A stretch of 64,000 nt of DNA from sequence record MZ443769.1; one strand, given 5' to 3'. Each line of letters opens with the position of its first letter. Within the stretch, counting starts at the first letter, position 1. The notes under the pieces were generated by a model. That model was not told the DNA's origin. It was given only the letters and a program-made list of their open reading frames with translations, and did no database searches. This document shows, one piece after another, positions 16,942 through 61,468 of this stretch. A program made the translations under genes and the position numbers.

Positions 16942-17206
16942 CTCTGTCCTCTAAAACGAATTGTAGTATACCCTCTACATTTACAGCCTTTAATCTCTTC
17001 GAGGTAGGCATAAGCATACCGTTGAGAAGGCCAAGCAAGTCTGCACTGTGGCAGTCAGGTGCAATCTGGTGAACGTAGATATCTTCGGGAATATCCTGAG
17101 GGTTAAGCTGCCAAGCAGTACGCAAGGCAGCACCCATGAAAGCAGGACGTTCCACCAAATGTCTGTTCAAGAAAGAACAAATGTCTTCGGCGGTTAGTGC
17201 TGTCAT
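16919..17206 (-). CDS. Hypothetical protein (95 aa)
   Basis: ATGA coupling to the polymerase stop. Confidence 0.65.
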   Translation of the reverse strand: MTALTAEDICSFLNRHLVERPAFMGAALRTAWQLNPQDIPEDIYVHQIAPDCHSADLLGLLNGMLMPTSKRLKAVNVEGILQFVLEDRDEDLPTA

Positions 17207-20200: not shown

Positions 20201-20367
20201 CCGTTACGCAAGTCATCAGAAGGCATATGGTCGAGGACGATTAGTGCTTTACCGCCTTTGGCACTCGTACTGAGGCCTTTAAGAATTCGAACACCATCAT
20301 ACGTCTGCACGTCTGCAAACTGTTTGGGAGGGTCGAAGTCGATAGCTATGTGCTTGGTCTTCACCAT
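17203..20367 (-). CDS. polA: Family A DNA polymerase with N-terminal UDG-like and 3'-5' exonuclease domains
   Basis: Exo I AVDTET, Exo II NAKFD, TGRTSASDPNLQQVP, motif A DYSAHEVR, motif B RNAVKTVIFGLIY, motif C VHDS. N-terminal ~230 aa with KPDYVLTFGKAPF resembles a UDG fold. Confidence 0.95.
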   Translation of the reverse strand: MVKTKHIAIDFDPPKQFADVQTYDGVRILKGLSTSAKGGKALIVLDHMPSDDLRNGKIFSSTEGELFLNQVQYLEDVFRTKTTLDDWNFLVISYNMFKTYEKTEQYKDDADAAFAERLKGIIVDYKPDYVLTFGKAPFKALNNEKIQFSKEHYEHWYGVEIPTKVKADGRKHSFIHLPNVSYNIVLNPGLISASSYTIGYMSRWMLPWLNKGMKYKIDTVTCGKKRNWDLVYVTKVKQLEKILKRMKRAKKVAVDTETENLNRIKNKILTVQLSDDGKKAYVIPVYHKDSPFSPKELRKIKEMFRDYFEENENDYQIYTNAKFDLNVMRSNFGIRSYAADVWDIQAGEFAFDENAKSLLSVTGQGYYNLANLTMQYGCTVYHEVSFGKEMRATIADVELDENVQEYAGLDVIIPFRIAEKQIQRARDIKYKKYESMVREQISDQIHAFSILEVTGAGADIDYLFKLNLPNSPINEEIRNVEREFMSSPEVRAANKAICVDDNVPKMGLMGAVEVTKFDMSKSEHKQVLFFDVMKLKPLKESDSQVRENGKKAGKLDKDFQAAYADVTIVALYTKLGKAYKLKNAYVNSLLKLWGTSDDFRHDRSIRPTYSYLKVVTGRTSASDPNLQQVPSRSEMGKLIKRILISRKNRLLIKVDYSAHEVRGWSIISGDQGVADVFEQGRKLRHRYRTVPDPWISHLVEVEGDVHKINAAYFFGIPVMEVTKAIRNAVKTVIFGLIYQQGDKGLAKSTGRDVKEIVEIKSKFLDRFPIGLKWFDKIKKFAHENFFVESPVGRRRHLWGFMLPESHKESNIVHAACDRRAVNSPVQGFGSDLMMSAIRILDRMKYEYWKSHGEYPDFDMNVSVHDSLTVDCDYKWIFLALDMIERAMTSAVVEVVQQRHPGFEFTSVPEIDFEIGATEKDVKGWDFSFTNLRKLITNGLIIKRDELNEPDLDVEATTDSIMEDQYHLMSDWMQKQLWANNIKIRSMSKVNPLTNKDKKNIELWQKELPKNTKMFEKYEAEEAAKKAAASVDGAKKKIKISSKILKSALKGITKK

Positions 20368-22275: not shown

Positions 22276-25200
22276 TTATACCGACTTGTTCTTAGAAGCA
22301 GTCAGTTTCAACTTGTCGAGCGACTGGATGCACTTCTTCAAGTTCGTGATAGTGTAACCTGCTTTCACGATCTTGTTGATGCGAGCCTTAGCACCAGAGA
22401 CGTTTTTCACGAAACCAATCCACATGCCGGTAGCAATATCAAACGTACCAAACTTACGAGTGTTCGGAACTTTGGTGCCAACGAAACGTTTCATTTTCGG
22501 GTTCGTGTTCAGGTCGAACATGATGCGCAGACGATCTTCCATCACCATCGGATATGCCTTGACGTGTTGCTTGTCGTTAGCAGTCTTGTGGCGTACAAGG
22601 AAGAACTGTTTCAACTGCGATTGCAGTTTAACAGCCAGCTTGTAGTTGAAGCTCAGACGCGGTGTTGATTCGTCGAAACTGTCCATGATGAACTCAAGAC
22701 GTTTAGCCGATGCGTTATCGAATTCCAATTTCTTGGAGTAGATGAAGTCCATCATCTTTTCGAAGTCCGCATAGTAAGCACAGTCGAAGTAGACGTAATC
22801 ACCAAACTCGGTGAAGTCGAAGTCTTTCAGTGCTTTCGCGTCAGGGTCTGTCGCGTCTGCATACAGCGCTACGAAGCCGTTGTATACGGTAGGCGTCAGG
22901 TCCATTGCCATGTCAGTACCGCTATCATCAAGAGTAATGATGCTGGCACCAGGCTTGGCTTTACGCACAGTGTTCGGCAGTGGAGGTAATTCAGATGCAC
23001 GGCGACGGCGTACTTTGCCCGCTGCTTCCTGAACACCTTCATTAACAGGCTTACCTGCTGCTACGTTCTCACGGCGCTTCTTAACGCGAACGGTCTTGCG
23101 TTCCTGAATCTCAACCTTCTCTTCTGTGGCGCGAGTGTCAGCAGTCTGTGATTCATCGGCGATGGTGTCTTCGACTTCAACACGACTTGCTTCCGCTTCG
23201 GCACGTTTGCGATCTTGAGCAGTAGCCCAAGGCTTACGCACAGAGAAGAACTTCTTGAGATCTGCTTTGCCCACAGCAGTAGCAACGTGGACTTTGTTTG
23301 CAGGAACAGTAACGAGATCTTCTGTACCAGACAAACGCACACGCACTGTGGTGATAGGCGAGTCAGCACGGAGTTTACCGTCAACAACACGAGCAGTAAC
23401 ACCGACAATCAGACCATTACCGAATTCAGTAACGACAGGCATCTTGTCCATCGCTGCTTTCATCATCGGACCGTCCGCGAAGTTCTGGTTACGTGCCCAA
23501 TCCAGCAGACGCTGTAAGCCCCAGCCATGACGGTCTGGAATCTTCTGGTTTGCTACGACAGGTGCTTGCTCCAGTACGCGGAAGTTTTTCAGAGGCGGTG
23601 TTTCCGGCAGAGGCATCATTGCTGCAACTGTCGTTGTACGCATCTCGTGGAACTCTTGCGATTCGATATCGTTCAGGTCTTTCTTCGCGCGGAAGTATTC
23701 GATGAAGTCTTCCATCGTGTTGTTATCGATCAACAACTTCGCGCTCATTTTGATCGGGTCAAGCTTGTATTCGTCCAGCTTGTCGTACTTAGGATTACCC
23801 TTTTCATCGAAGCGGGTTTTCTCAAGCGTCTTCCACATCAGACGAGCAACCTTACCAACTTCTAAGGTCTTGTTCGTCATCACCCAGTCAATGAATACGA
23901 CTTCACGAGGCATATCACCCGGCTTACCGTTTTCATCAAGTTGCGCAGCAGAAACATCAGGACGGAAGATACGAGCAGTAGACTGATCGTAAGTACCTGG
24001 TGACCACGGTGTATCACAGCGGATAATACGACTACCCATCTGCATGTTGTGGCCTTCACTGATAGCCTGTTCGTTCGCAATCAGAATCTGAACAGCGTTG
24101 TCAGTTTTGAATGCGTCGAGGTTAGCGTCTTTGCTTTGGCCGAGCTTACCGACTTCGCCGTGATAGAGAGCAGCAATCTTCTTGTAGTTCTCAGGCAGTG
24201 CGTTGTAGATAGCGTTAGCAGCACGAACATAACGAGTGAAGACGATCAGCTTACCTTGTGTTTCAGGTTTCCAGTAATCTGTGTCATCACTTGGTGGAAC
24301 GTTGGACGGCGGCAGATACTGACGTTTGAACGCATCGGTCTGCTTACGCGCAAGATACTTCTGACCTTGATAGACAGCAATATCCAGCTCACGAGGTTCT
24401 ACGCCCGGACGCCATTCGAAGATCTGTTGGTCAGACTGATTGTTTGGATCAGTATCACGCTCAGGCTGTACTTCGAAGTGTTTCTTAATACGGTTGATGA
24501 TAGCGACAACTTTCGCACTGACAAAGTTAGTCACACCAGCATCTTCAAACGTCAGGCGCGCTACGTCATCACCCATTGGGTCAGTCAGTAACATCTCCAT
24601 ACGCTGGAAGTACATGTTCAGGTCAGCGTTACCTGCGAGCAGCGCACCGAGATCATCACCTTCTTCAATCTCAGATACGTCGATGCCGCTTTCTTCATCT
24701 GGACCATCTGCATCACCACCGTCATCTTCGTCGTCTTCCATCGCACGTCTACGCGCTTTAGCCGAGTTAGATGCCTCTTGCAGTTTCTCCAACACTTGAG
24801 AGTACATCGCTTGATATACTTCCATGTGCAAGTTGGAGTTAGGCACGGATGGATCATCAATCTCTACCTGAATGAAGGTGTCGATTGGGTTAGGCAGCAT
24901 GAACGCCCAGTGCTTACGCTTGAACTGAATGAACGCTGTGTGGTTTGCCATACGAGAGTGAGCACGACGAATCATTTCGATATCGTCTTTCGCACCGTCA
25001 TACGCTACGTCGAGTGAGTCACCGAACATAGCAGGTGTCATCAACGCGGCTTGACCAACAATGTCACGCACACGGTCTGTTACCAACGTACCAGTAGCGA
25101 TACGCGCATAACGAACAGAAGGCGCAGTGAATACTGCTTTCGTGTTGAAGTGCACCTGACTACCAGACTGACCGCCGCTGTAGTTCTTAACTTTGTGCGA

Positions 25201-49620: not shown

Positions 49621-50154
49621 CTACAATTCGAGTTCTTCGTGCTCGGCTTCCATTTCAGCGGCAGACCAAGAACGAATCACGGATGCGTTACCACGATTAC
49701 CAGTCAGCATTGTTTTAACTGCTGGTGATGCTTCTACTTCTGCGTAGTGGTTGGCGAGAGCTTTCTCGTCTTTGAACCACATAAGTGCCGATGCACCTTT
49801 TGAGCATACTAAGAACTGAACAGGCTTTCCATTACCGACGTTCAACGTCATGTAATAATCACCAACGCCATTAACACTGAGCATAGGCATGGGCTTCATC
49901 ACGTATTGGAAGTCGTCCGCTGTTTTAAGCGTCTTATCGCCGAGCAACCAGATAGCACCTTCTTCACCTGAGCGAATAGCACTGAGTTGACCGCGGCGCG
50001 TAGAGATTGTACCAAACGTTTCTTGATCGAAACGGGACAGACCGAAGATAAGGCTCGCAAGCTTCTTCAGGTCAGGAGTCGTGCAAGGACTATGAATTAT
50101 AGCCTTACCCTCAGACTCAAGTATGATTTTTGAAAGGGAAACAAAGATTTCCAT
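49621..50154 (-). CDS. Hypothetical protein with MEIFVSLSK leader
   Basis: 177 aa; CTAATTTC motif upstream. Confidence 0.75.
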   Translation of the reverse strand: MEIFVSLSKIILESEGKAIIHSPCTTPDLKKLASLIFGLSRFDQETFGTISTRRGQLSAIRSGEEGAIWLLGDKTLKTADDFQYVMKPMPMLSVNGVGDYYMTLNVGNGKPVQFLVCSKGASALMWFKDEKALANHYAEVEASPAVKTMLTGNRGNASVIRSWSAAEMEAEHEELEL

Positions 50155-50187
50155 CAGCTTAGATTCCGGTTGCAGGTAATTGTACTC

Positions 50188-50195
50188 GAAATTAG
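50188..50195 (-). promoter_or_regulatory. CTAATTTC variant of the late motif
   Basis: 33 nt upstream of the start; GACGCTAATTT context identical to 44557. Confidence 0.6.
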
Positions 50196-50219
50196 CGTCT
50201 GATCAGACTTTTCTGAAAT

Positions 50220-50250
50220 AAAAATGGGCAGCTCATTGGCCACCCATTTT
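50220..50250 (-). terminator. Rho-independent terminator
   Basis: Minus strand AAAATGGGTGGCCAATGAGCTGCCCATTTTT. Confidence 0.75.
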
Positions 50251-50254
50251 ATGC

Positions 50255-51547
50255 TTATTTAGAAGACTTCTTCTTCTTTTTCTTCTTAGGTTTTTCTTCG
50301 TCGTCTTCTTGTTGATCGCCGAATGAGACGTTCAACTGACCGCTATAAATCTGCGCCATCAATTCAGTCACAGTTGATTCCAACATGATATCGGCAGGCA
50401 CAGAAGTTGAGTTGAATGCAATCTCTGCATTAGCCAACGCTTTCTGCAAAAAGATCAAGCGTACTAAGTTCACACTGATCTTATCTTGCTTAACCATGTT
50501 CAGGAACATCTTGAGTCCAGCAGACTGCCACTTGTTTGTTTCGGCGTAATGACCGAGAACACCATGCAGCACCCAACGAGCTTTCACTACGATAGCACGA
50601 GGGTTGTTCGCTTCACGTAAGAACTGAATCACACCAATAAGATCCATCTCGTGGAATGCACCAATGACTTGAACAGCTTTGGCTTCCATTTCAATTTCAG
50701 GATCGGCTGCTGCAAGTTCTGCAACCAGCTTCTTATCGAAGTCTTCACCACCGAGCACGGACGAGTAAACGTTTTGCAACATCGAGATTGCACCACGCAT
50801 CTGACCACCAGCGTATTCAGCAATCTGGTGCATTGCTGCTTCTGCTTTCTCACGCGCTTTATCTTTCTTAGGCAGGATTTCGAGCTTGCCTGCGATTTCA
50901 ATCAAACGAGTGTGAATGATATCAGTCGGTACAGGTCTGATTGGAAGCTGAGTCATACGACCGACCATCGTACCTTTCATCTTCTCTGGGTTCGTCGTAA
51001 TGAAGATGAACACAACGTGAGCTGGCGGCTCTTCCGTAATCTTCAAGAACTTCGACTCTGCGGCACTGGACATTAAGTGGCATTCGTCGAGAATGAATAC
51101 ACGGCGTTTGAACAGCGCGTTACGAGATGCAGAGTCAACGATGTTCTGGCTACCGTCAACTTTACCTGCATCACCACCCATATCGTATTCTTGAATATCA
51201 GGATGTGAGTCAGGACCTGCATCAGCCATCTGACAGGAACGACATTTACCACATGCGCTGAACGTGTCGCAGTTGATGTACTTAGCAACCATACGACCGA
51301 ACGTTGTTTTGCCTGCGCCTGTGTGACCACTGATCAGAATAGTTGAGGGGATGACACCAGACTTCTTCCAGCCACGAAAGATTTTGACAATGTGATCTTG
51401 ACCAACATAGTCTTCAATACGACGTGGACGGAACTGAGCACCGAAGTTAATAGTCTTGAGTTCTACAACGTCCGTGCTCTTACTTTTCTTTGAAGGCTTA
51501 TCGTCACTGAATGCACGAGCCTTCTTTTTCTTTTCTACTTTCGCCAT
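50255..51547 (-). CDS. dnaX: Clamp-loader ATPase, DNA polymerase III gamma/tau-like
   Basis: FRPRRIEDYVGQ, GHTGAGKT, zinc CDTFSACGKCRSC, FILDECH, GGQMRGA; start MAKVEKK at 51547. Confidence 0.9.
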   Translation of the reverse strand: MAKVEKKKKARAFSDDKPSKKSKSTDVVELKTINFGAQFRPRRIEDYVGQDHIVKIFRGWKKSGVIPSTILISGHTGAGKTTFGRMVAKYINCDTFSACGKCRSCQMADAGPDSHPDIQEYDMGGDAGKVDGSQNIVDSASRNALFKRRVFILDECHLMSSAAESKFLKITEEPPAHVVFIFITTNPEKMKGTMVGRMTQLPIRPVPTDIIHTRLIEIAGKLEILPKKDKAREKAEAAMHQIAEYAGGQMRGAISMLQNVYSSVLGGEDFDKKLVAELAAADPEIEMEAKAVQVIGAFHEMDLIGVIQFLREANNPRAIVVKARWVLHGVLGHYAETNKWQSAGLKMFLNMVKQDKISVNLVRLIFLQKALANAEIAFNSTSVPADIMLESTVTELMAQIYSGQLNVSFGDQQEDDEEKPKKKKKKKSSK

Positions 51548-51582
51548 TTTAAATCGCCCTTTGATTTTGTCTCTACTCGCTA

Positions 51583-51591
51583 TATTTACAG
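51583..51591 (-). promoter_or_regulatory. CTGTAAATA motif upstream of dnaX
   Basis: Exact motif after a terminator. Confidence 0.7.
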
Positions 51592-51610
51592 TATTCGGCA
51601 GTGTACAGAC

Positions 51611-51648
51611 AAAAAGAAAGGACCACATCCCAAAGCGGGAGGGTCCTT
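51611..51648 (-). terminator. Probable terminator
   Basis: Minus strand AAGGACC..GGTCCTTTCTTTTT. Confidence 0.6.
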
Positions 51649-51701
51649 ATGATCGAGACATAAAATGGTGATAACAACTATCGGCAGTGGGCGCTGGCGA
51701 T

Positions 51702-51899
51702 TCAGGCAAAACTCAACTCCCAACGAGGTACAACTCGGGAGAAGGTTTTAAAGTGGCTTGGTGGATTTCGTTTGAGTTGAGCAACAGAGCGTTCAACTTC
51801 ATCATAGTCTTTGATATCACTCGCAACGGTGTGAGTGACGAACGTACCGTCAGCATGAATCAAATCAGCGACAACACGGTATCGTGGGATTCTAAACAT
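51702..51899 (-). CDS. Hypothetical protein (65 aa)
   Basis: Strong AGGAG SD; CTGTAAATA at 51941-51949. Confidence 0.7.
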   Translation of the reverse strand: MFRIPRYRVVADLIHADGTFVTHTVASDIKDYDEVERSVAQLKRNPPSHFKTFSRVVPRWELSFA

Positions 51900-51940
51900 G
51901 TATTCTCCTGCTATAAAAAATTCTCGTCGTTATTGAATTA

Positions 51941-51949
51941 TATTTACAG
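51941..51949 (-). promoter_or_regulatory. CTGTAAATA motif
   Basis: Exact motif 41 nt upstream of the start. Confidence 0.7.
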
Positions 51950-51989
51950 TTAAATCCAGTTCAAATCCTGAACTAAAGTAAGACTAATC

Positions 51990-52340
51990 TTAAACTCCAA
52001 TATGCTCTCGTAAAAACATATTGGAGTTAGCCCTCGACAGATGACGGTCTATCGAAGACTATCCCCCTGCACTCTTGTATGTACGTCAGTGCAGGAACGT
52101 TCGCGGTCTTATGCGCTATATCTCGCAGCAGGGTTGGCAGCAGGTAGCAGGGTCCCTCGCTGCATAGCGCGGCCGCACTTCGGCCATCAGTGTTACGCGG
52201 TGTTACGCGGTGTTACACTGAGCGGCCTTGACTCTTTGGCCGAGTCGGTACAAAAAAGTGTCTGGCCCACAATGAAGGCATGAAGCATTCGGGCCAGACC
52301 AAAACTTTCGAAGCAAACTCCTTATGCCTCGTTTTGTACA
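51990..52340 (-). ncRNA. Candidate structured non-coding RNA or origin-like locus
   Basis: No credible ORF; at least six inverted repeats of 5-12 bp, a 10-nt tandem repeat, and a CTAATTTTTAC motif at 52342-52352 pointing into it. Confidence 0.45.
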
Positions 52341-52344
52341 TGTA

Positions 52345-52352
52345 AAAATTAG
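52345..52352 (-). promoter_or_regulatory. CTAATTTT(TAC) motif with no downstream ORF
   Basis: CTAATTTTTACATG, the same 14-mer as before the H1-like gene. Confidence 0.6.
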
Positions 52353-52379
52353 AAACATCTCGCAATATTCAGACAATTC

Positions 52380-52967
52380 TTAGTCTAACATTGGAATAAA
52401 GTTTTCGAGGAAATGCTGGCGATCAAACGAGCTAATACGATGCGGATGATCGATGTGCGCGTTCCATGGTTGGGTGAACAGCAATACGTTCTTCGGAAGT
52501 GCTGATACATCTCCGACGCGAGTAAAGTTGTTCGTTACCTGAGTACGTGGGTTGTCGTCAATCAGGTAGTAACCGTCTTCACCGTGAATTGAATTCAAGA
52601 AAGCAATCTTATCAGGATGCTCTGCTGGATTCAGTACGTGAATGTGATCGAACATCGACAGGTGAGGAGCCAGAGCTTTGCGAGTATAACGTTCACCTTT
52701 CTCATGATAACCACGATGCGTACAAACACCGAGAGAGAATCCTTCACGCAACAGGAAAGAAAGCGTTTGAATGAAGTAATCATTCATGTCAACTTCTAAC
52801 ATGAAGCGACCGCTCTCCAGCAGATCAACGAAAGGCTTGCCACCAATCTCAGGAGTGATGTAGCGATCTTCGACCATGATGCCGTGGCCTTGCAGATGGA
52901 GATTCATGTACAAGTGAGTACGGAATCCCGTGTCATCTAAGTCAACGTAAATAGGTTTCAAGTCCAT
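52380..52967 (-). CDS. HAD-superfamily 5'(3')-deoxyribonucleotidase-like protein
   Basis: IYVDLDDT (DxD), VCTHRG, LIDDNP, LFTQPWN motifs. Confidence 0.8.
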   Translation of the reverse strand: MDLKPIYVDLDDTGFRTHLYMNLHLQGHGIMVEDRYITPEIGGKPFVDLLESGRFMLEVDMNDYFIQTLSFLLREGFSLGVCTHRGYHEKGERYTRKALAPHLSMFDHIHVLNPAEHPDKIAFLNSIHGEDGYYLIDDNPRTQVTNNFTRVGDVSALPKNVLLFTQPWNAHIDHPHRISSFDRQHFLENFIPMLD

Positions 52968-53299
52968 TAGTGTCTCGTGCCATTTACCAAAATAGGTATG
53001 TTGTTGATACGACCGAGAGATAAGAAGTGCTTGTGGTGAAGCTGTCTCATTTCATCGGCATTCGTTACGAAGATGACTTCCTGATCGTAGTCCAGCTGGA
53101 AGCACGGTACTTCACGCAGTTCTACGATATCACCAATCTCACAGACGTGGTACGGGGCATTCAGCCAAACAGAACCGTTAGAACAATAAAGAATGTGACC
53201 CACGTAATAAACATCATCAAGTGAAATCATGTGAAGAGGTTCGAACATCAAGGCTTCGTTATCGTTGAAGTCGAAAGTGAAATCATCATCGTCAGGCAT
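52967..53299 (-). CDS. Hypothetical acidic protein (110 aa)
   Basis: GAGG SD; TAATG coupling. Confidence 0.7.
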   Translation of the reverse strand: MPDDDDFTFDFNDNEALMFEPLHMISLDDVYYVGHILYCSNGSVWLNAPYHVCEIGDIVELREVPCFQLDYDQEVIFVTNADEMRQLHHKHFLSLGRINNIPILVNGTRH

Positions 53300-53302
53300 A
53301 TG

Positions 53303-53875
53303 TTAAGACCTCAAATCAATCAGGATAGAAGCACTGAGATCACGAAGCATACTGCGACCTAGTGATGTGTACATAACCTGAGAAACAACAATGCGTTCGA
53401 GGAACAGACGAGAGCTTTCAACATCGTGACCTGTCTTACCGCGAACATATTCGATTATAGAGGAAGGTGGCTGTATGAGGAAGGTAAGTATTTCTGCATC
53501 ATGCAAAACAGAACCCATGTCAGTAACAGGGCGCATCTCTGTTTCCTGATCAAGGATGTATGCGAGAACACGCTCACCGTTACCAGTGATTGGATTTTGT
53601 TTGAAGAAAGAACGAGTAACGTCCACAGTGTGTTTAAAGTTGTAGTCGCTACTCGTTGGAAGACGCAAGAAAAGTGAAGCAAGTAAAAGGTTAATATCGA
53701 CCTGAGGGCCGCTTTCAATATTGAGCATCGCGTGAGAAGTGAGAACAACATTGAGAGCGAAATCCCTAGTGTACAGTGTATGCGCAGCCGCGTGTCTGTC
53801 ATAGAAGTCAAGGGCTTTCCGTAACCCTTGATTCATTAACAGATGTTCTGCTTTTATGCGGGCGAGGCGCTGCAC
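53303..53875 (-). CDS. Hypothetical protein, possibly degenerate HD-domain
   Basis: LLLASLFLR in place of LLxAALxHD; later VLHDAEIL resembles the xxDAD motif. Confidence 0.55.
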   Translation of the reverse strand: MQRLARIKAEHLLMNQGLRKALDFYDRHAAAHTLYTRDFALNVVLTSHAMLNIESGPQVDINLLLASLFLRLPTSSDYNFKHTVDVTRSFFKQNPITGNGERVLAYILDQETEMRPVTDMGSVLHDAEILTFLIQPPSSIIEYVRGKTGHDVESSRLFLERIVVSQVMYTSLGRSMLRDLSASILIDLRS

Positions 53876-53876
53876 T

Positions 53877-54848
53877 TTAGTTTTCCCCGCGGATTTCTTT
53901 AAGCGAGTTCTTCATCGCTTTGCGCAGAGACTTACCAACATCAATACCGTCGATGTGCTTCGCAAACACATGGGCGAACAATGTTGTTGGGTTTTTCATT
54001 ACTGCTTTGTCGAGATCAGGACGGCCACCAGCAATCTGAATCTCTCCAGGCCACAGGTCTGCAATAGCGGCAGAGTCCTGTCCTGCAATCAGTTCGAGTT
54101 CACGCACACTGATTGAGTTCTGACGTGCGATAGTACGGAAGATGATATCGACGAAAGGCAGAAGGTCTTCGGACACAACGTTCTTCACGTCTTTGGCATC
54201 ACCAGCACGTTGGAAATCTTCCATCAGTTCTGTCAGAGTTTTCTGATCGATCTTCTGAACGTTGCGCAGTTTCTTAAACATCACCATCCAGCGAACTTTA
54301 CGCTTAGAACTTACGAGGTGAGTCCAGACGCTTTCGCCTAATGCAAGGAGTAGACGATTATAAACATCCACACTAACGCAATCACGATCAACGAACACAG
54401 AGACTTCATCATGCCATTCATCCTTCCGGAACTTAGTTCGGAATGAATGCGTCTTCGAGCCTGACTGCTGAATGAAATTGATAGACGCCATACGTCTTAC
54501 AGCTTCACGCAGTTTGTACTTGTCGATCAGCTTAGGAAGTTTCTTCACGCCGATCATACAGGCTTTACGAACTTCCGATTCACGTCCGTACAGATGCAAC
54601 GCAGGCATATCAGAAATAGCAGGCAGACCTACGTGCGGACGAACAGTAACACCAAACACAGAACTGCCCGGCTCGGGGTCATCACCAAGTACGCACAACA
54701 GGTCAGTGCTTGGCAGGAATTTAATCACGACGGGTTCTGGCAGATGCAGCGAGTTAGCAGCAAGGCCAACTGTTTTACCTGTCGCTAGAACCAGAAGATT
54801 TTTATTACCCTGCCTTACGACAACATAATCTTTTTCACGATGTTTCAT
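53877..54848 (-). CDS. Hypothetical protein (323 aa)
   Basis: Long collinear ORF. Confidence 0.75.
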   Translation of the reverse strand: MKHREKDYVVVRQGNKNLLVLATGKTVGLAANSLHLPEPVVIKFLPSTDLLCVLGDDPEPGSSVFGVTVRPHVGLPAISDMPALHLYGRESEVRKACMIGVKKLPKLIDKYKLREAVRRMASINFIQQSGSKTHSFRTKFRKDEWHDEVSVFVDRDCVSVDVYNRLLLALGESVWTHLVSSKRKVRWMVMFKKLRNVQKIDQKTLTELMEDFQRAGDAKDVKNVVSEDLLPFVDIIFRTIARQNSISVRELELIAGQDSAAIADLWPGEIQIAGGRPDLDKAVMKNPTTLFAHVFAKHIDGIDVGKSLRKAMKNSLKEIRGEN

Positions 54849-54856
54849 AACGGCCT

Positions 54857-55333
54857 TTAGATTTGAGTTTCAGAAGAAAGAAGTCCGTGAGTCATACCAG
54901 CAGCAGGATGCCACTTGGTAGTTACGTTGAGGAGAGCTTGCTCTTCCCACGCATCATTGTCTTCAAGTTGTTCGCAGATCAGAGCGAGCGCCATGTTCTC
55001 GTCTTTGCCTAAGTGCGCGAAGTCAGCAACAACGATCTTAGGCTTAGACAGGTCTGCGATCTCTTCGAGACAGTATTGCAGTTCTTGCAGCGAGTTAACG
55101 GCATACGAACTGCAATCCATCAGACCAGCATATTCAGTTGGTCCAAAGTGAGTGATCGCAAAGTCAGGCGCGATATCATGCAAGCACAGGAAGTGCATCA
55201 GGTCAGTGGCAATCGACGGCTGAACTTGCATGTTAAGTACCGCGATTGAGCACGGTACGTCTGATACGATTTGAAGATCACATGATGTTCCAGCAAGGTC
55301 TTTGACGATGCTGTGTGCGAGAAGGTTGCTCAT
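54857..55333 (-). CDS. Hypothetical protein (158 aa)
   Basis: GAGG SD; collinear. Confidence 0.7.
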   Translation of the reverse strand: MSNLLAHSIVKDLAGTSCDLQIVSDVPCSIAVLNMQVQPSIATDLMHFLCLHDIAPDFAITHFGPTEYAGLMDCSSYAVNSLQELQYCLEEIADLSKPKIVVADFAHLGKDENMALALICEQLEDNDAWEEQALLNVTTKWHPAAGMTHGLLSSETQI

Positions 55334-55344
55334 GATGAAGCCCT

Positions 55345-55569
55345 CTATTTCTCTTCTGTTGGGTATGATACAGGACTAGAAGTCTTGTAGAAGTTAAAAT
55401 CCGTGTTGAAACGAACAGAGGCGCGAGACACTTCTGTTTGTGCCCGCACCGACTTCTGCTGTTTGCGTTTGTTGAGAGACTCACGACGATCGAGGTCGTC
55501 AAAGATACCAGACCGTCTGTGGTACTTGAACTTCGGATGCACTGAAATATCTTTGACGATAGCGGTCAT
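55345..55569 (-). CDS. Hypothetical basic protein (74 aa)
   Basis: ATGA coupling to the upstream gene. Confidence 0.6.
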   Translation of the reverse strand: MTAIVKDISVHPKFKYHRRSGIFDDLDRRESLNKRKQQKSVRAQTEVSRASVRFNTDFNFYKTSSPVSYPTEEK

Positions 55570-56591
55570 TTTTTATATTGTCCCGTTACTGAATAGATAA
55601 GAGATTTTTTGTACAGCCGAGCATTGACGATCAGATACTTAAACTCTTTGGTCACATCAAGCTCGCCTCCAACAACTTTGGAGATTGGAATATTTTCGAT
55701 ATCAGCAATAGTCAAGGCTGTACCCATCTCACTGAAAGAAAACGAAGAAGACAGGGAAAAGCTGTTCAACGATTTCTTTGAAATGTTCGATGGGTGTTTA
55801 CCATGTTGACGTTTTGCATCAAGCCAGTTCTGCCAGTCACTCGTTGCATGATTCATAGAACGAAGAATTAGCGAGCGTGGAACTGTACTTGGATATTTCT
55901 TACGAAACTCCGTGACGACAGTAGAGACAGGAGGACCTGCTGATACGCGACGTTTATCTTTGAGTACCTTTCTCAGGTAGTCAGACCAATGAGAATAAGC
56001 TTCGACTCGAATCTGGATATACTCGTCCAGACGAATCGCTTGCTCGATACTGCATTCAATTTCGAATGTCACCAAAGAACCGCGATGACGTTCTTGGTTT
56101 GGTTTGTGTCGCGCATCCTGTTTAGCAGCCTGAATTTCAGAAGACACTTTATCACGAACACACGAAGCCCAAGCATAAACGAGCGTGAGACGCATGTCAG
56201 GTCCGTCAACTAAAACTTCAGGATAGAATTCAAGCAGCAATGGAATTGCATATCCAATCGCGCATCTGCGCTCGATGTACGCGGACTTGAGTTCACCGAT
56301 ATTCAGTTTACCCTCGGCAGAAAACATCTCTTTGGTTTGTTTGTGTGAGTCGGCTATTGCACCGCCTTCCCCTAGAACATCAGCCACAGTCAGAGTAGAT
56401 TTTGCTATGGCTGCATATGCTTCTTCGATTGAAACATCAGGCCAAGTACGGTAACCAGTTTCATCGAGGACAAAAGTCCTACGACAATACAGCTCGTAGA
56501 TGTGCAAAAAGTCCGCGACAGACAGACTTGATGGGTACACGAATTTTTTAGTTACTTTCTTTGGCGTGATACCGGCTTTTTTCTTAATCAT
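55566..56591 (-). CDS. Hypothetical protein; C-terminal half resembles TnpB REC/WED without RuvC
   Basis: By-eye similarity of TFEIECSIEQAIRLD..TEFRKKYPSTVPRSLILRSMNHATSDWQNW..HP..SKK..SF to the IS200/IS605 TnpB N-terminus. Confidence 0.45.
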   Translation of the reverse strand: MIKKKAGITPKKVTKKFVYPSSLSVADFLHIYELYCRRTFVLDETGYRTWPDVSIEEAYAAIAKSTLTVADVLGEGGAIADSHKQTKEMFSAEGKLNIGELKSAYIERRCAIGYAIPLLLEFYPEVLVDGPDMRLTLVYAWASCVRDKVSSEIQAAKQDARHKPNQERHRGSLVTFEIECSIEQAIRLDEYIQIRVEAYSHWSDYLRKVLKDKRRVSAGPPVSTVVTEFRKKYPSTVPRSLILRSMNHATSDWQNWLDAKRQHGKHPSNISKKSLNSFSLSSSFSFSEMGTALTIADIENIPISKVVGGELDVTKEFKYLIVNARLYKKSLIYSVTGQYKK

Positions 56592-56598
56592 CGCTTTC

Positions 56599-58281
56599 TC
56601 ACTGGAGTTTACTAACTATTTTTTGATACTCTCTATTTACAGTTTCTATATCGGTAGAGAACCCTCTCTTCGTGAATAGATTACGTCTAACGGTACCCAT
56701 ACGCAAGCTGTTCTCCCACAAGCGCATAAACAACAGGCTATTAAGAGTCGGTGTCATGAAAGGTTTCTCTTTCAGTTCAACATCCCCTTTGTAATCCGTT
56801 AGCAGGATAGCACCATCGAATTCCGCACTACACCACTCGGTCTCAGCCAAGATCTTGAGAAGGTTATAGCTCTCTTGACCTTGAACATAATGACTAAGCA
56901 CGGTGTACTTGTCTTTGTTGAAGAGTTCGATCTTCACAGAGTGCGAACACTGGACGCTATTCTTAAAATGATATTCGCCGCCCCTGCAATACGAGGAGTC
57001 TCTGATTCTATCGCAGAGTTCAGAAACAACTTTACCTGCAGGCTCAAATAGTTTTTTCCATCTGTCCCAAATCCAATCAACGTAGTCCGCTAACTCCTTG
57101 TCATCGAACTTATTCTTTTCTGCAACACGTTGAATTTTCGGGTCGCTGCATAGTTGACGATAGATATCAGTTTTTACAGGACGTGGTTGCTCGTCATCAG
57201 ATCTGCTTTCAAAATGTTGACGGAACCACTGGCGATTACTCCAACCACTATAGATACCACCGTAGTTAAGAGTCTTCGCTGTGCCCCTGCTTATCTTCAA
57301 ATATTTAGCAACAGCATCGTGATCAAGTGCCTCAAGCTCAGGACATTCAAGCCCATACTCCGCCAAGAGTTCTATGAGCAGGACCATCTGAGCATTCGGC
57401 ATATCGAAGTTACGGCCATACGAATGATCGAAGCATAACAGCTTAACCAACTTAGGCATAGCAGCAGCAGTTCCAAAAAGCCTTGAGCCTGTTGGGTTCA
57501 TTTTGTATATGTCGTAAAACTCGACAAGCCTGTCATTCGGGTCGTCGTTAACGAGCTTAAACCCAAACTTGCACACGCGCTTTAAGAATATATCGAGACG
57601 GAAATGCAGGCCGTCTTTTCGATTTGTCTTAGCGTTTTTCATTATGTCAAGGAATCGGTCGAGATAGAATCTATACGGACGTTGATTCTTTTGAGCCTTG
57701 TTAATGAGTGTTATCAGTTCGGAGCTACGTCCCCTGTGCTGTGAAAAGTTATCAGGTCTGACGAACGGTTTTGGTTTTATCGACGTACGGAACGAGGACT
57801 CAACTAAATCTTTCTCGTTAACGTAAATAGGTCTACGCCTCAGAGGTTTCATCAGGTTGTACATGGGTTCATCTTCAACGCACAAACTCGTAAACGTGGA
57901 TAAAATCGTTTTATTGAGCGTGTACTTACGGGCAATCCCCTTAACGTAATCGTAACGTGTTCTGTCGACCCTTTTGTCCAACCAAGCTTGCACGGAATGC
58001 GCTTTCCATCGGACTAAGGCATATCGCATCTTTTCATGAGCCCGCATGTACGTGTAGGTGACTACGGTTTCATTATAAATGTTTCTACGGTCAGAAATCT
58101 TCGACTTATCGATCAGGTGCATGAAAAACCAAGCTAAACTCTCGTAAAACTTATCAGATTTAGCGTTCGGTGGCTTTGGACAGGAATAAATCATATCCCA
58201 GAAGTATTTATGCGCTGATCTTTGTACCGTGGCTGCCCACCCTGGTAGCTCGGCTTTCTTTTTGAACACGGCCTTGGCCAT
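56599..58281 (-). CDS. Minimal PolA-superfamily (TV-Pol-like) polymerase/primase
   Basis: GSRLF, motif A-like NFDMPNAQM, motif B RGTAKTLNYGGIY, YVQGQES, motif C-like EFDGAIL; no exonuclease motifs seen. Confidence 0.6.
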   Translation of the reverse strand: MAKAVFKKKAELPGWAATVQRSAHKYFWDMIYSCPKPPNAKSDKFYESLAWFFMHLIDKSKISDRRNIYNETVVTYTYMRAHEKMRYALVRWKAHSVQAWLDKRVDRTRYDYVKGIARKYTLNKTILSTFTSLCVEDEPMYNLMKPLRRRPIYVNEKDLVESSFRTSIKPKPFVRPDNFSQHRGRSSELITLINKAQKNQRPYRFYLDRFLDIMKNAKTNRKDGLHFRLDIFLKRVCKFGFKLVNDDPNDRLVEFYDIYKMNPTGSRLFGTAAAMPKLVKLLCFDHSYGRNFDMPNAQMVLLIELLAEYGLECPELEALDHDAVAKYLKISRGTAKTLNYGGIYSGWSNRQWFRQHFESRSDDEQPRPVKTDIYRQLCSDPKIQRVAEKNKFDDKELADYVDWIWDRWKKLFEPAGKVVSELCDRIRDSSYCRGGEYHFKNSVQCSHSVKIELFNKDKYTVLSHYVQGQESYNLLKILAETEWCSAEFDGAILLTDYKGDVELKEKPFMTPTLNSLLFMRLWENSLRMGTVRRNLFTKRGFSTDIETVNREYQKIVSKLQ

Positions 58282-58652
58282 TTTTAACCTCAGAACAACT
58301 TTCTTGGTTGATCTTTACAGAATCTCTGGCTGATCATGGTATATACGCTGTATAAATGCTTGTTCTAGCAATTCTCTACCCAAAGTTGATATCAGGAGGA
58401 TATCTATCAGATAGGTTAGGTACAGCTTCATCTACATGCAGCTTGAGCGCACTATAGTCACACGAAATTCATACCATAGACCGATGAGGGAGCGTCCAAA
58501 AGTATTCATTAGGCGAGTAGTGATATGTCCAGAGGTGCGAAAGGGCTAAACCGTCTATAGGCGCCTTTTTTGGTGTCAATTCGGGATTTTCTCAATCTAA
58601 CGTATGCGTGATTAAATCCTTGCACCTCTGGAGCGATTCTGTAGGGAGTCGG

Positions 58653-59309
58653 TTATTTTTTGCGCGAAACCTTCTGCCCCAGTTTTACGCCAATCTGCGT
58701 CATAATGCGCTTAACGGTATCTCCGTCATGCTCCGCCATAGCCTGCGCAAGCCTTTCGCCCTGCTCGCGTGAAAGTTCAGGCATAACCATTTTAAGCATA
58801 GTCGAACGCATTTGAGCGCTCTTGCTGCGCTTTTTCGACAGCGAGGTCGTTTCCATCTCCTGCGCTACTCGGCGCATTGTACGTTGGACGCGACGATCAG
58901 CGAAGATATCACCAAAGATATCGCCGAATAGGTCTTTGAACGACATACCGCCTCCCATTACATCGTCCTTTGTGAAACGAACAGGCTGTCCGAGCGCATT
59001 CGTTTTAGCGCAATGTGTAGATTCGACAGCGTTTTGAATGCGATCGCCCGTGCGCGTTACTTCGTCAGGACGTGACGGCTTGCCCTCTGCTCCAGGATTT
59101 GTATCACCGTTACGCAGCGCAGGGTCACCTTCAACTTGTTTGTTTTGATCAAACATGTCATCGGCTGTAGCGCTTTGATTCGGGTCAAACGGAATCTTGC
59201 CTGTAAGCTTGTTAGGGTCAGGATACGAACGAGGGATATCAGACGCAGGCTGAGGCATGTTCGTCATATCGCCGTTCTTTTCGCTATTCAAACTAATCAT
59301 TACTCGCAT
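58653..59309 (-). CDS. Hypothetical protein with MRVMISLNS leader
   Basis: Start 59309 with AAGGA SD; low-complexity N-terminal half. Confidence 0.7.
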   Translation of the reverse strand: MRVMISLNSEKNGDMTNMPQPASDIPRSYPDPNKLTGKIPFDPNQSATADDMFDQNKQVEGDPALRNGDTNPGAEGKPSRPDEVTRTGDRIQNAVESTHCAKTNALGQPVRFTKDDVMGGGMSFKDLFGDIFGDIFADRRVQRTMRRVAQEMETTSLSKKRSKSAQMRSTMLKMVMPELSREQGERLAQAMAEHDGDTVKRIMTQIGVKLGQKVSRKK

Positions 59310-59319
59310 TTTTCGTTCC

Positions 59320-60429
59320 TTATCGAATTTTATAGCCTTTGAAAATGTTGTACGCAACTTCTTTGCGCTGTACAGGACGAGTGACGCACACCCATTCCCA
59401 TTGATCGTTCTTCGCCGTACGCTTCTTAGGCGCTTCCATAACTTTCAGCACGTAGTTTTTGAAAGGCAGCACTAAGAAGTCTTCAGGCTCAATAGCTCCG
59501 CTACGTGCAGGCAGAACAACCGTGATGTTACCGACTGTCAGCTCCTGTTCGTAGTTCAACACGTTTGCTTCGTCGCTGATGTTGCCGTTAACAGGAGGCA
59601 CACCCAAGTCGAAGATCATCGCAACGTGCGTGAAAGACTCAACATTACGGATTCGTAGTGTTACGTGCTGCCCGCGAAAACGGTCCATGTTTGCGGCTGT
59701 CAATTCGACCTCTACGCCGTTCAGGAGCAGCATAGGGCGGGGAAAAGCGGGCAATAATCTTTCGTTCTCACGAATAGAATAAGTCGCCTGCGTAAAGTAT
59801 TTTGGAATAAGCTGATCGAAATCCGCGTGTGCATCTTTGCGTTGCTGTCTAAACGTGGACGGACTTGTTGATTGATCCAACGTATAGCCAGACAGCTCTT
59901 TGACGTGATGGTGCGTGACGATGTTATAGATATAGCCTGTTGCTGCGAATCCCGGGACAATACCCTGACGGAAACAAATGCCGCAGTTCGCAACGTTACC
60001 TGCATCACCTCTGACGTCAAACTCTTCGTCAGTGCCTGTACCCATAATGTCTGCTGCATCCATTGCTGCATCCATGCCGTCGTCGATATCATCGAACGCA
60101 ACAGTCTGGCGACCTCCACCGAACATTGTCTTTGACACAGTACCGAGTTTAACTCCACCAGCTACTTCGTTGGAGCTACGACCAAGACCCTTCAATGGAC
60201 CTTCTTGATCATCGAATTCATCGTTCTCAACCTTGTTGCAACTACAGGTAATACCCATCTTCGCTTTCTTGAAGATGACTACCTGCGTTGAATCGACAGC
60301 AAGCGCCTGTTCAACTTTGGACTGCACCACTTCTTGGATACTGTCTAAACGTTGTTGCACTCGTTCTGTTTCGTAGGTCTTATGACGGTTGTAACGGTTG
60401 GTGGGTTTACCACGTTCAATCCAGCTCAT
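59320..60429 (-). CDS. Putative neck/head-completion virion protein
   Basis: Start MSWIERG with GAGGAG SD; GITCSC..CGICF..G..PGF motif resembles jumbo-phage neck proteins; late motif upstream. Confidence 0.5.
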   Translation of the reverse strand: MSWIERGKPTNRYNRHKTYETERVQQRLDSIQEVVQSKVEQALAVDSTQVVIFKKAKMGITCSCNKVENDEFDDQEGPLKGLGRSSNEVAGGVKLGTVSKTMFGGGRQTVAFDDIDDGMDAAMDAADIMGTGTDEEFDVRGDAGNVANCGICFRQGIVPGFAATGYIYNIVTHHHVKELSGYTLDQSTSPSTFRQQRKDAHADFDQLIPKYFTQATYSIRENERLLPAFPRPMLLLNGVEVELTAANMDRFRGQHVTLRIRNVESFTHVAMIFDLGVPPVNGNISDEANVLNYEQELTVGNITVVLPARSGAIEPEDFLVLPFKNYVLKVMEAPKKRTAKNDQWEWVCVTRPVQRKEVAYNIFKGYKIR

Positions 60430-60450
60430 AATTGTCTCCTCTTTGTGCTT

Positions 60451-60458
60451 AAAATTAG
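60451..60458 (-). promoter_or_regulatory. CTAATTTT motif
   Basis: 21 nt upstream of the 60429 start. Confidence 0.65.
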
Positions 60459-60486
60459 TGTTAAATTTTTTAGGACATTGCACCTA

Positions 60487-60502
60487 GTAAATAGTTATTT
60501 AC
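60487..60502. promoter_or_regulatory. Palindromic pair of GTAAATA motifs at the strand switch
   Basis: GTAAATA-GT-TATTTAC between divergent genes. Confidence 0.55.
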
Positions 60503-60528
60503 AAGCACATTGAATTACGGAGTCGAAT

Positions 60529-61077
60529 ATGCGTATTCTTACAGGCGACCCTGGTAAAGTAAACTTTGCGTTGTCTGTTCAGGAGTTTAAGGACAATCGC
60601 ATAGACATACTGGGTACGAGGATGTTCCACAGTCCTATACAGAACCTTCATTACGATATGCGCGAACCGACCAAAGCGTTCATGAAAGAGCTTGAGGACA
60701 TGTGGAAACAGTACGGTCCGTTTGATGCAATGTGCTTCGAACGCTTTCAGTCGCGTGGTTTAGGTGGCAACACAATTGAAGCTATCAGTTTGATGCTCGG
60801 TGTTGCTTCCGTGTTCGCGCTTAAAAAGAAATGTCCGATTGATCTGATTACTGCGAGTCAGTGGAAAAATGCGTTCAACCGCACTATGAACCTGAAAGAG
60901 TATTACGCTCTCCACAATCTGACTTCAAAGAAAAGCAGGAAAGCTATTCACGAATTCGACGCAAGTCTTATTGGCGTGTACACTTTCTACAGACAATCAA
61001 ACATCAAACCATTCACGGGCTTCGCGCGTATCCTCAATACATACTGCACGAAGTTCCTTGCATCACCTGTTTTATAA
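60529..61077 (+). CDS. RuvC-like Holliday junction resolvase
   Basis: ILTGDPGKVNFAL (D), MCFERFQ (E), ITASQWK and IHEFDASLIG (D) follow the RuvC/RNase H-fold catalytic pattern. Confidence 0.8.
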   Translation: MRILTGDPGKVNFALSVQEFKDNRIDILGTRMFHSPIQNLHYDMREPTKAFMKELEDMWKQYGPFDAMCFERFQSRGLGGNTIEAISLMLGVASVFALKKKCPIDLITASQWKNAFNRTMNLKEYYALHNLTSKKSRKAIHEFDASLIGVYTFYRQSNIKPFTGFARILNTYCTKFLASPVL

Positions 61078-61086
61078 GGCAGGATC

Positions 61087-61431
61087 ATGACTCTGACCGA
61101 AAGTGTTATTGCGCAAAACATTATCCACCCTGTTCTTGAGATCTTCTTTAAAGCTGAGATTCGCTTTTTGAAGCAAGGCCAGCTTCCTGTAGATGCGTCT
61201 GGTAATGCTCTGACAGAAACTGAATTCAAATCAACGTGGCTCACTCCAAACAAGTTGATCCGTGATTTCCATGATACTATTGCCTGTCAGTTGTGGTCCA
61301 CACTCAATCCTGATATCGGTTGTGTATTTTGGATTCGTGACAATGGCACATTGAAGCAGGACGACAAAAACTTTACTCATTTTAATTACGCAGTTGATAC
61401 TCGTGGTTATGAGTCTGGTGCTTATTCCTGA
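61087..61431 (+). CDS. Hypothetical protein (114 aa)
   Basis: AGG SD; collinear. Confidence 0.7.
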   Translation: MTLTESVIAQNIIHPVLEIFFKAEIRFLKQGQLPVDASGNALTETEFKSTWLTPNKLIRDFHDTIACQLWSTLNPDIGCVFWIRDNGTLKQDDKNFTHFNYAVDTRGYESGAYS

Positions 61432-61468
61432 TTCAGTTTTTGCAATATCTTCTATTTAAGGTACGACC

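Follow-up and report, generated by a model that had tools for sequence, protein, structure and literature searches.

The stretch of DNA analysed here (the window, 64,000 nucleotides (nt)) is part of the genome of Erwinia phage pEp_SNUABM_52 (MZ443769, 261 kb, species Sasquatchvirus Y3), window position 50000 corresponding to position 174000 of the record. At 56599-58281 on the minus strand it carries a gene which a first-pass annotation, made from the letters alone, had taken for a second, exonuclease-less member of the PolA superfamily of the TV-Pol kind, and whose product is listed in the record as a hypothetical protein (QZE56079). The open reading frame (ORF) is real, beginning with ATG and encoding 560 amino acids (aa), and each of the five motifs that had been named for it lies where it had been placed (GSRLF at residue 265, NFDMPNAQMVLL at 291, RGTAKTLNYGGIY at 332, YVQGQES at 465 and EFDGAIL at 487). 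The region in front of them, described as basic and aromatic, has an isoelectric point of 9.95 over its first 264 aa, with 20% K+R and 14% F+W+Y. The gene is followed by that of a second protein, referred to here as the partner, and preceded by a non-coding leader, all three being part of a cassette that is replaced in related phages (Table 1).

Searches of Pfam, NCBIfam, PADLOC and the PDB sequences (phmmer and two profiles) returned nothing significant for the polymerase, the only lead being motif B of Pol gamma at E 0.2. PF00476 (DNA_pol_A) gave no match at E <= 1, either to the protein itself or among 76 sampled relatives, none of which matches any Pfam, NCBIfam or PADLOC family, and PHROG 30690, of unknown function, is the sole library match of the window protein. 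As far as it is testable, the description as exonuclease-less holds, as there is no Pfam match to an exonuclease and the modelled N-terminal part is mostly helical; none of the invariant N-terminal positions in an alignment of two subfamilies (see below) is acidic.

Table 1. Positions in the window of the polymerase gene, its conserved blocks and the other parts of the cassette
Feature	Position	Strand	Basis and remarks
Predicted TV-Pol-type, exonuclease-less family-A-like polymerase gene	56599..58281	-	560-aa ORF, ATG start; model with mean pLDDT 82.5; Foldseek; hhalign
Residues 265-273, G-S-R267-L-F-G block; predicted beta-hairpin with invariant Arg, equivalent of PolA T-G-R	57463..57489	-	R267 100% in 157 sequences; aligns to T7 DNAP T-G-R; short strands between 252 and 269
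Residues 291-302, motif A; N291-x-D293 at strand end (290-293), Q298 at the steric-gate position	57376..57411	-	D293 99%, N291 97%, Q298 84% (His 12%); D293 = T7 DNAP D475, Q298 = E480
Residues 332-346, motif B / O-helix equivalent; R332-x-x-x-K336-x-x-x-Y340-x-x-x-Y344	57244..57288	-	K336 98%, Y340 67%; aligns to T7 DNAP R518/K522/Y526/Y530 and to Pol gamma motif B; helix 332-343
Residues 463-474, S-H-x-x-Q467-G468-x-E470 block, equivalent of PolA N-x-P-x-Q-G; invariant Glu specific to the family	56860..56895	-	G468 and E470 100%, Q467 79%; aligns to T7 DNAP L-Q-S block
Residues 485-493, motif C; E487-F/H-D489-G490 at beta-hairpin turn	56803..56829	-	D489 and G490 100%; position 488 His in 84%; D489 = T7 DNAP D654, T7 RNAP D812; strands 483-487 and 490-493
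Partner gene, 341 aa	55566..56591	-	Begins 7 nt beyond the polymerase stop; N-terminal part helical, C-terminal domain all-beta
Non-coding leader of the module, 371 nt, part of the swapped cassette	58282..58652	-	No annotated ORF; blocks conserved in three type-A phages
Inverted repeat bracketing the leader, left arm TACAGAATC	58635..58643	-	9 nt
Inverted repeat bracketing the leader, right arm GATTCTGTA	58316..58324	-	9 nt; some 40 nt ahead of the start codon of the polymerase
3.1-kb replaceable cassette (partner, polymerase and leader)	55570..58673		No blastn alignment to the Y3 segment of equal length

Conserved motifs and fold of the polymerase

Word-indexed searches recovered two narrow subfamilies, one of the window type (11 clusters from Erwinia phages, Yoloswag and pEa_SNUABM_5 among them) and one of the type of Y3 gp219 (17 clusters, including Yersinia phage fHe-Yen9-02). 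The two are about 20% identical, yet they share 30 invariant positions, among them R267, D293, K336, H464, G468, E470, E487, D489 and G490, and since the catalytic positions are invariant across such a distance, the conservation of the motifs is more than chance. An exhaustive search with a hidden Markov model (HMM) of the family against 1.84 billion representatives yielded 416 relatives when the threshold was E <= 1e-3 and 122 when it was E <= 1e-10, most of them 450-650 aa long. When conservation was counted in 158 relatives aligned to the profile, R267, G468, E470, D489 and G490 were found in 100%, D293 in 99%, K336 in 98% and N291 in 97%. Phages and mobile elements thus harbour a family of at least 416 representative clusters for which no curated model exists. 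Two existing annotations of its members may be amended: the homolog in pEa_SNUABM_5 (locus L006, 6013-7686) is wrongly labelled 'putative helicase', the family showing no helicase signal, and AD1_214 of Dickeya phage AD1 is annotated with 351 aa where an intact ORF of 545 aa spans the whole polymerase (locus L200, 3384-5018).

An AlphaFold2 model built from a 28-sequence alignment reached a mean predicted local distance difference test score (pLDDT) of 82.5, with values >85 across most of residues 190-530. Searched against the PDB with Foldseek, as the first-pass annotation had suggested, its top 42 matches all belong to the PolA/T7-RNA polymerase (RNAP) superfamily, comprising T7 RNAP, the Pol I enzymes of Taq, Bst and Aquifex, POLRMT, Pol gamma, T7 DNA polymerase (DNAP) and Pol theta, with probabilities of 0.9-1.0 and marginal E values (1e-3 to 0.5), which upholds the placement in this superfamily. 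Alignments to DNAPs are compact, the best local superposition being that on T7 DNAP (1t7p, 229 columns at 4.7 A), and 2y1i aligning over 320 columns at 7.5 A. In a viral structure library, the protein's own relatives come first (Yoloswag and the Dickeya phages JA29, JA11 and JA13), after which come proteins that are unnamed or of giant viruses, an RNAP of a Vibrio phage and many PolAs. In the model, D293 ends the strand 290-293 and D489-G490 form the turn between the strands 483-487 and 490-493, which is the arrangement of family A; the lack of a palm with two juxtaposed Asp, which had been named as the outcome that would overturn the prediction, is therefore not what the model depicts, at the level of topology.

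Since hhalign comparisons with single sequences of T7 DNAP, T7 RNAP and the phage PolA were too weak (only T7 DNAP motif B aligned, at E 0.014), template profiles were built from viral contigs, with 75 sequences of T7-like DNAPs and 76 of T7-like RNAPs. The family profile is collinear with the DNAP profile over 388 columns at a score of 29.6, compared with 17.2 +/- 3.4 for 60 column-shuffled templates (maximum 24.9, z 3.7). This alignment bears out the motif assignments of the first-pass annotation and places G-S-R267 on T-G-R of T7 DNAP, D293 on D475, Q298 on the steric-gate residue E480, R332/K336/Y340/Y344 on R518/K522/Y526/Y530, Q467 on the L-Q-S block and D489 on D654. A recent duplication of the phage's own PolA was ruled out as the origin of the gene, as the profile of the jumbo-phage PolA family scored at z 0.4; judged by these sequence comparisons, the tie between the two polymerases is at superfamily level only.

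The same fold could also belong to a single-subunit RNAP, transcribing a subset of the phage genes or making RNA primers, a possibility already raised in the first-pass annotation. The best Foldseek E value is that to T7 RNAP (1.2e-3), with POLRMT matched as well, the Glu of DNAPs at the steric gate is replaced by Gln or His, and motif C is H-D-G, with one carboxylate as in H-D-S of T7 RNAP and not H-D-E; in addition, the N-terminal region is large and basic, and the authors describing the divPolA2 enzymes considered such a function for similar proteins (PMC11348598). However, the alignments to T7 RNAP are long and poor (700-800 columns, root-mean-square deviation (rmsd) 20-25 A, template-modelling score (TM) 0.23-0.28) where those to DNAPs are compact, the score with the T7-like RNAP profile was no better than with shuffles (z about 0), and position 340 is Tyr, not the Met of the motif B of T7-like single-subunit RNAPs (K-x3-M-x3-Y). 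Furthermore, the phage lineage encodes a sigma factor of its own and is thought to use it with the host RNAP, the conserved blocks upstream of the gene do not recur as a promoter motif in the 64 kb, and CcPol, to our knowledge the only TV-Pol that has been characterised biochemically, uses deoxynucleoside triphosphates (dNTPs). An RNAP is thus distinctly unlikely.

It might also be considered that the protein has retained the fold for a structural or binding role and lost activity, as the Arg of the RxxxK motif and, in most of the family, Tyr 344 have drifted. This we regard as hardly credible, given that both Asp, the hairpin Arg, the Lys of motif B and the Q-G-x-E block are 98-100% conserved at an overall identity of 15-20%. 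That the Arg hairpin, both Asp, the helix with Lys and Tyr and the Q-G-x-E block are conserved is a strong argument in favour of an active two-metal polymerase.

TV-Pol membership and gene neighbourhoods

The TV-Pols were predicted in 2008 as a minimal, ancestor-like form of DNA Pol I and T7 RNAP (Iyer, Abhiman & Aravind 2008, PMC2579912). As characterised in the main text of that study, they combine an N-terminal thumb built from two antiparallel helices, a beta-hairpin whose Arg is invariant, an RNA recognition motif (RRM)-type palm with two Asp, and fingers with an RxxxK motif on a helix of a helix-turn-helix (HTH)-like unit, have no nuclease domain and measure 400-600 residues. The window protein has 560 aa and no nuclease domain; two helices (207-219 and 223-239) directly precede the hairpin, whose short strands lie within 252-269 and which bears R267 (100% in 157 sequences), and the two Asp of the palm are recognised at the level of motif and secondary structure (D293 99%, D489 100%). 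R332-x-x-x-K336 lies on the helix 332-343 behind the helices 314-317 and 321-328, position 332 being basic in about 45% of the family.

A direct link to the published group is provided by cyanophage Ma-LMM01, which is named as a TV-Pol carrier in PMC2579912, its gene number not being given in the main text. Its protein gp030 (506 aa, hypothetical) matches the Erwinia-phage profile over 329 columns and all motif blocks (hhalign probability 96.2%, E 2.2e-9) and the wide family HMM at E 7e-28, with phmmer values to the retrieved relatives down to 1e-14. The gene lies about 150 nt downstream, on the same strand, of a genuine tnpB (gp031, OrfB_IS605 and TNB), with the Y1 transposase gene tnpA (gp032) in divergent orientation (locus L177, 22746-26129). 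Such a setting beside IS605-type tnpB and tnpA agrees with what PMC2579912 describes. Eight further records of Microcystis phages contain gp030 with 97-100% conservation.

In the main text of the same study (PMC2579912), TV-Pol genes are described as neighbours of a D5-like helicase or of a resolvase, integrase or IS605-IS630 transposase, often together with Bro/KilA-C genes and in restriction-modification hot spots. Similarly, the chromosomal relatives identified here (Nostoc, Cuspidothrix, Blastocatellia, Rhodothermaceae) have a KilA-C/Rha or AntA gene immediately upstream and tyrosine integrases and restriction-modification genes nearby, and metagenomic relatives adjoin terminase, HNH, integrase and ParE, integrase and ParA, or type I restriction genes. 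In the cassette of the window itself, neither Pfam, PHROG nor the annotation revealed a D5-like helicase, resolvase, integrase or transposase. Because of the homology to gp030, the structural features listed above and the KilA-C, integrase and restriction-modification neighbours, the polymerase was filed as TV-Pol-type, in agreement with the assignment in the first-pass annotation. We are thus confident that it is a catalytically competent, proofreading-less enzyme of the PolA/T7-RNAP superfamily and of the TV-Pol group, its activity being predicted. A genome scan with a 4-sequence alignment returned cyanobacterial and environmental genomes, none of them of a species listed in the 2008 paper. 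As a separate observation, the KilA-C/Rha or AntA antirepressor-type gene immediately upstream in cyanobacterial chromosomes (loci L203, 5046-5777, and L207, 3691-4410) could form a conserved two-gene unit with the polymerase gene.

A replaceable cassette with partner gene and leader

Upon comparison with Y3, the flanks of the cassette are nearly identical (98.3% over 50000-55569 and 97.2% over 58674-61090), and nothing aligns between them by blastn. At this site Y3 encodes the polymerase gp219, only 22% identical to that of the window, followed by two small proteins. In modules which we term type A, found with the partner in 5/5 phages, a gene for 325-344 aa lies within about 10 nt after the polymerase gene; modules of the Y3 kind are termed type B. 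The partner lies directly downstream in all five type-A phages and diverges along with the polymerase, the partner being 62/58/34/29% identical to the window copy where the polymerase reaches 69/66/37/41% and the genes on either side 58-78%. The possibility that the small downstream proteins of Y3 represent a split partner found no support, as BLASTP found nothing and hhalign gave E values of 0.24 and 0.46. The allele type (A or B) does not follow genome relatedness, and the module has therefore been exchanged horizontally. Leader, polymerase and partner evolve faster than their flanks and are exchanged as a unit between phages, and no empty cassette site was seen in any relative examined (Erwinia, Dickeya and Yersinia phages). 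A further difference from Y3 is located at 61091-61456, where a 366-bp segment with an extra gene (pEaSNUABM52_00225, 114 aa) is absent from Y3 amid DNA that is 97-98% identical.

The module might also serve in conflict, the product of the polymerase interfering with a host defence or a rival phage in counter-defence or inter-phage competition, and its rapid turnover would then reflect an arms race. The polymerase and the accessory genes have diverged far more rapidly than the genes around them and have been replaced as a whole between phages that are otherwise nearly identical, even the set of accessory genes being exchanged between types A and B, and the chromosomal relatives reside in restriction-modification or defence-island-like regions. 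On the other hand, no PADLOC defence model and no known anti-defence family was matched, and fast evolution is expected of non-essential or selfish genes as well. A conflict module is therefore not likely, but worth bearing in mind.

The model of the partner (pLDDT 83.6) begins with a helical part and ends in a compact C-terminal domain of six strands. Among the PDB structures, the top 15-20 or so Foldseek matches are all TnpB, Cas12f, Cas12k or TranC (probability about 1.0, E 2.5e-4 to 0.1), aligned over 180-215 of the 341 residues at an rmsd of 4-6 A. As the highest target-normalised TM (0.68) is to a structure of ISDra2 TnpB in which RuvC is unresolved (8ex9_A), the likeness is to the WED-REC, guide- and target-binding half of these proteins. 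The partner gave no Pfam, PHROG or PDB sequence match and, unlike the genuine TnpB gp031 of Ma-LMM01, no OrfB_IS605/RuvC or TNB signal, and profile and sequence comparisons with gp031 itself revealed no similarity. Read conservatively, the model suggests an oligonucleotide-binding (OB)-like beta domain and a helical bundle that may bind nucleic acid. A general linkage of TV-Pols with TnpB was considered but found no support, as no TnpB, TnpA or partner-like gene adjoins 16 other members of the family and the partner does not resemble the TnpB of Ma-LMM01. Nuclease-dead derivatives of TnpB are known (TldR, dCas12f-sigmaE), some of them in phages, and a conserved TnpB-PrimPol operon exists in Deinococcus (PMC10691335).

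The TnpB-derived look of the partner fold also bears on the question of whether a selfish TV-Pol element has become resident in the phage lineage, with the enzyme as its replicase or primase, serving the propagation of its own cassette rather than the replication of the phage, for example by copying itself in place of rival alleles. TV-Pols are typical of transposon-like elements, including that of Ma-LMM01 beside tnpB and tnpA, and the relatives adjoin integrases, ParA, KilA-C and restriction-modification islands; moreover, the boundaries of the cassette are sharp within flanks of 97-98% identity, and the allele type is independent of genome relatedness. A mobile element of this kind is nevertheless unlikely, considering that the slot is occupied in every relative examined, that no recombinase, transposase or nuclease was found in the cassette, and that no terminal repeats flank it, the only repeat being one that brackets the leader.

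The leader varies between 329 and 497 nt in length across all type-A relatives, and a search of Rfam returned no match for it. The inverted repeat that brackets it (Table 1) has counterparts of 8 and 10 nt at the same positions in Yoloswag and pEa_SNUABM_5, with different arm sequences, and none was found in type-B phages. In positional shuffle controls, repeats of this kind occurred in 22/2000, 66/2000 and 3/2000 cases; since the search windows were chosen after the first case had been seen, this evidence is suggestive only. A perfect 11-nt inverted repeat within the leader (58528-58538 and 58622-58632, 83 nt between the arms, z -2.9 for the 136-nt fold) was dismissed as probably not functional because it is absent from the closest relatives. 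The first-pass annotation had also linked the polymerase to 'novel promoters' of the phage. This link found no support, as the conserved leader blocks recur no more than by chance in the 64-kb window and are thus discounted as a recurring phage promoter; a scan for sigma-70 promoters returned fewer sites than in shuffled sequences.

If leader and partner are taken together, it might be speculated that the module acts as one machine, in which a structured RNA from the bracketed ~300 nt of the leader, bound by the TnpB-like WED-REC partner, would act as guide, primer or template when the polymerase synthesises DNA, an RNA-directed module that would have evolved from a pairing of TnpB and TV-Pol as in cyanophage Ma-LMM01. 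We consider this very unlikely.

Possible role and relation to known systems

The first-pass annotation had already remarked that the phage possesses a full replicative PolA, and this is the case: a protein of 1054 aa encoded at 17203-20367 on the minus strand matches DNA_pol_A (2.7e-53) and DNA_pol_A_exo1 (1.1e-15). Two helicases, one of the SNF2 type with 1951 aa and one of the ResIII kind, are also encoded in the window, as is a clamp loader; a DnaG-type primase, whose sequence is 99% identical to that of Y3 gp227 (CHC2 zinc ribbon and Toprim), lies about 1.1 kb past the window end, and a protein that binds single-stranded DNA (SSB), a UvsX-like recombinase and the sigma factor lie farther beyond. 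Since PolA with its exonuclease, a DnaG-type primase, a clamp loader, SSB and helicases are all present, the TV-Pol-type enzyme is accessory and not the replicase.

Some observations on these replication genes may be added. In the 1951-aa ORF (22276-28131), SNF2 and Helicase_C are matched only in the middle of the protein (residues ~850-1390), the long N- and C-terminal parts having no Pfam match. In the replicative PolA, about 230 residues before the exonuclease domain are likewise without a Pfam match; in the related lineage, a uracil-DNA-glycosylase domain is reported for this place in the PaBG paper. Several PolA relatives on viral contigs (L193, L194 and L199) have matches that are longer by about 1.2 kb, which could be due to inserts such as inteins or introns. 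Beside the DnaG-type primase, Y3 gp229 (locus L178, 3811-4896), annotated as 'CRISPR/Cas system associated', is a PD-(D/E)XK nuclease (Cas4/RecB-like), a homolog of which is located just outside the window.

A parallel for an accessory enzyme of this type is offered by CcPol-MP of SCCmec, a primase using dNTPs whose activity needs the two Asp and the partner MP (PMC7581432), and by the Pol-SSB pairs on mobile elements of Bacillota (PMC10061031). By analogy, we tentatively propose that the polymerase is an accessory DNA primase-polymerase which acts on single-stranded DNA together with its partner, a reading to which we give nearly even chances. The basic, mostly helical N-terminal region (residues 1 to ~250) would end in the helical hairpin 207-239 serving as the thumb, and the beta-hairpin would present R267; D293, at the strand end of motif A, and D489, at the hairpin turn of motif C, would bind the two catalytic metals, while binding of the incoming nucleotide would fall to K336 and Y340 on the O-helix equivalent. 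The partner, encoded 7 nt downstream, may supply nucleic-acid binding, in parallel with CcPol, which is a dNTP-using primase only when bound to MP. We infer a DNA rather than an RNA product, de novo initiation, a physical complex with the partner and the biological role itself. DNA synthesis is favoured by the profile similarity to DNAPs and not RNAPs, by the K-x3-Y-x3-Y spacing as in T7 DNAP and by the dNTP preference of CcPol. Gln or His at the steric gate, the single carboxylate of motif C (H-D-G) and the variable position 344 give no clear indication of the choice of sugar.

Several points weigh against such a primase-polymerase. The similarity to PolA at the sequence level is weak (pairwise E 0.008), with no significant PDB match by HMM, and the z of 0.4 obtained with the jumbo-phage PolA profile counts in the same direction; catalysis is, for the whole family, a prediction. 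Across the family, the steric-gate position holds Gln or His and in no case Glu, the residue of DNA Pol I and CcPol, and 77% of the members have Phe or Met at position 344, where PolA and T7 RNAP have a universally conserved Tyr, so that the sugar selectivity is not readable from the sequence; moreover, position 332, the Arg of RxxxK, is basic in only ~45%. The conventional primase already present in the phage makes a second one not obviously needed. With regard to the partner, the type-B modules (Y3, AD1 and pEa_SNUABM_32) encode proteins of ~170 and ~165 aa in its place, unrelated to it by BLASTP or hhalign, and 16 other family members have no partner-like neighbour, so the partner is not a general requirement.

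The polymerase represents a new, unannotated branch of a family known from computation. What is new is that a lineage of lytic jumbo phages carries it at a fixed yet hypervariable site, that the cassette has three parts, and that the partner is TnpB-like. A plaque-forming phage with natural allele swaps and a defined partner provides a tractable system for studying TV-Pol function, and, should the partner indeed be akin to the guide-binding half of TnpB, a polymerase-linked case would be added to the known exaptations of TnpB. In practical terms, the findings bear on genes that are now annotated as 'hypothetical protein' or, wrongly, as 'putative helicase'.

In relation to the canonical family A DNAPs (T7 gp5, Klenow/Taq; PF00476), the protein shares the palm and fingers topology, the order of the motifs (TGR-A-B-QG-C) and the catalytic residues, but it falls below the Pfam threshold, lacks a 3'-5' exonuclease, and has Gln for the steric-gate Glu, H/F-D-G for H-D-E in motif C and an invariant E470 in the Q-G block. 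With the TV-Pols, as set out in the main text of PMC2579912, it has in common the minimal PolA-like core, the helical thumb, the hairpin Arg, the two palm Asp, the Lys-bearing helix of the fingers and an extra helical N-terminal region. It differs from that description in being a fixed, syntenic and hypervariable gene of a lytic jumbo-phage lineage with full replication machinery, in a cassette without D5-like helicase, resolvase, integrase or transposase, in that the Arg of RxxxK is not family-wide, and in its new partner protein.

Another second polymerase, divPolA2 of barbaviruses and Vibrio phages, was described in 2024 (PMC11348598). It is likewise a diverged, exonuclease-less PolA beside a regular replicase, with an unrecognisable N-terminal domain, a variable neighbourhood and fold matches to DNAPs and mitochondrial RNAP, but it is not detectably of the same family. 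Identity of the two was rejected, as divPolA2 of Vibrio phage 1.063.O (AUR84708) matched neither family HMM nor phmmer, and hhalign (probability 1.9%) aligned only the G-G-R...Q-N-L-P turn at E 0.026. For the partner, the modelled fold points to the WED-REC lobe of TnpB, Cas12f and Cas12k; unlike these, it has no TnpB sequence similarity, RuvC or TNB zinc ribbon, and the likeness, known from the fold alone, covers ~180-215 of 341 residues. Compared with CcPol-MP as described (PMC7581432), CcPol has the steric-gate Glu E174 where Gln or His is found here, MP is a small OB-fold protein and not a 341-aa TnpB WED-REC-like one, and no helicase gene is part of the operon in the phage. What the module shares with CcPol-MP and with the Pol-SSB pairs (PMC10061031) is an exonuclease-less A-family polymerase encoded beside the gene of a putative nucleic-acid-binding partner.

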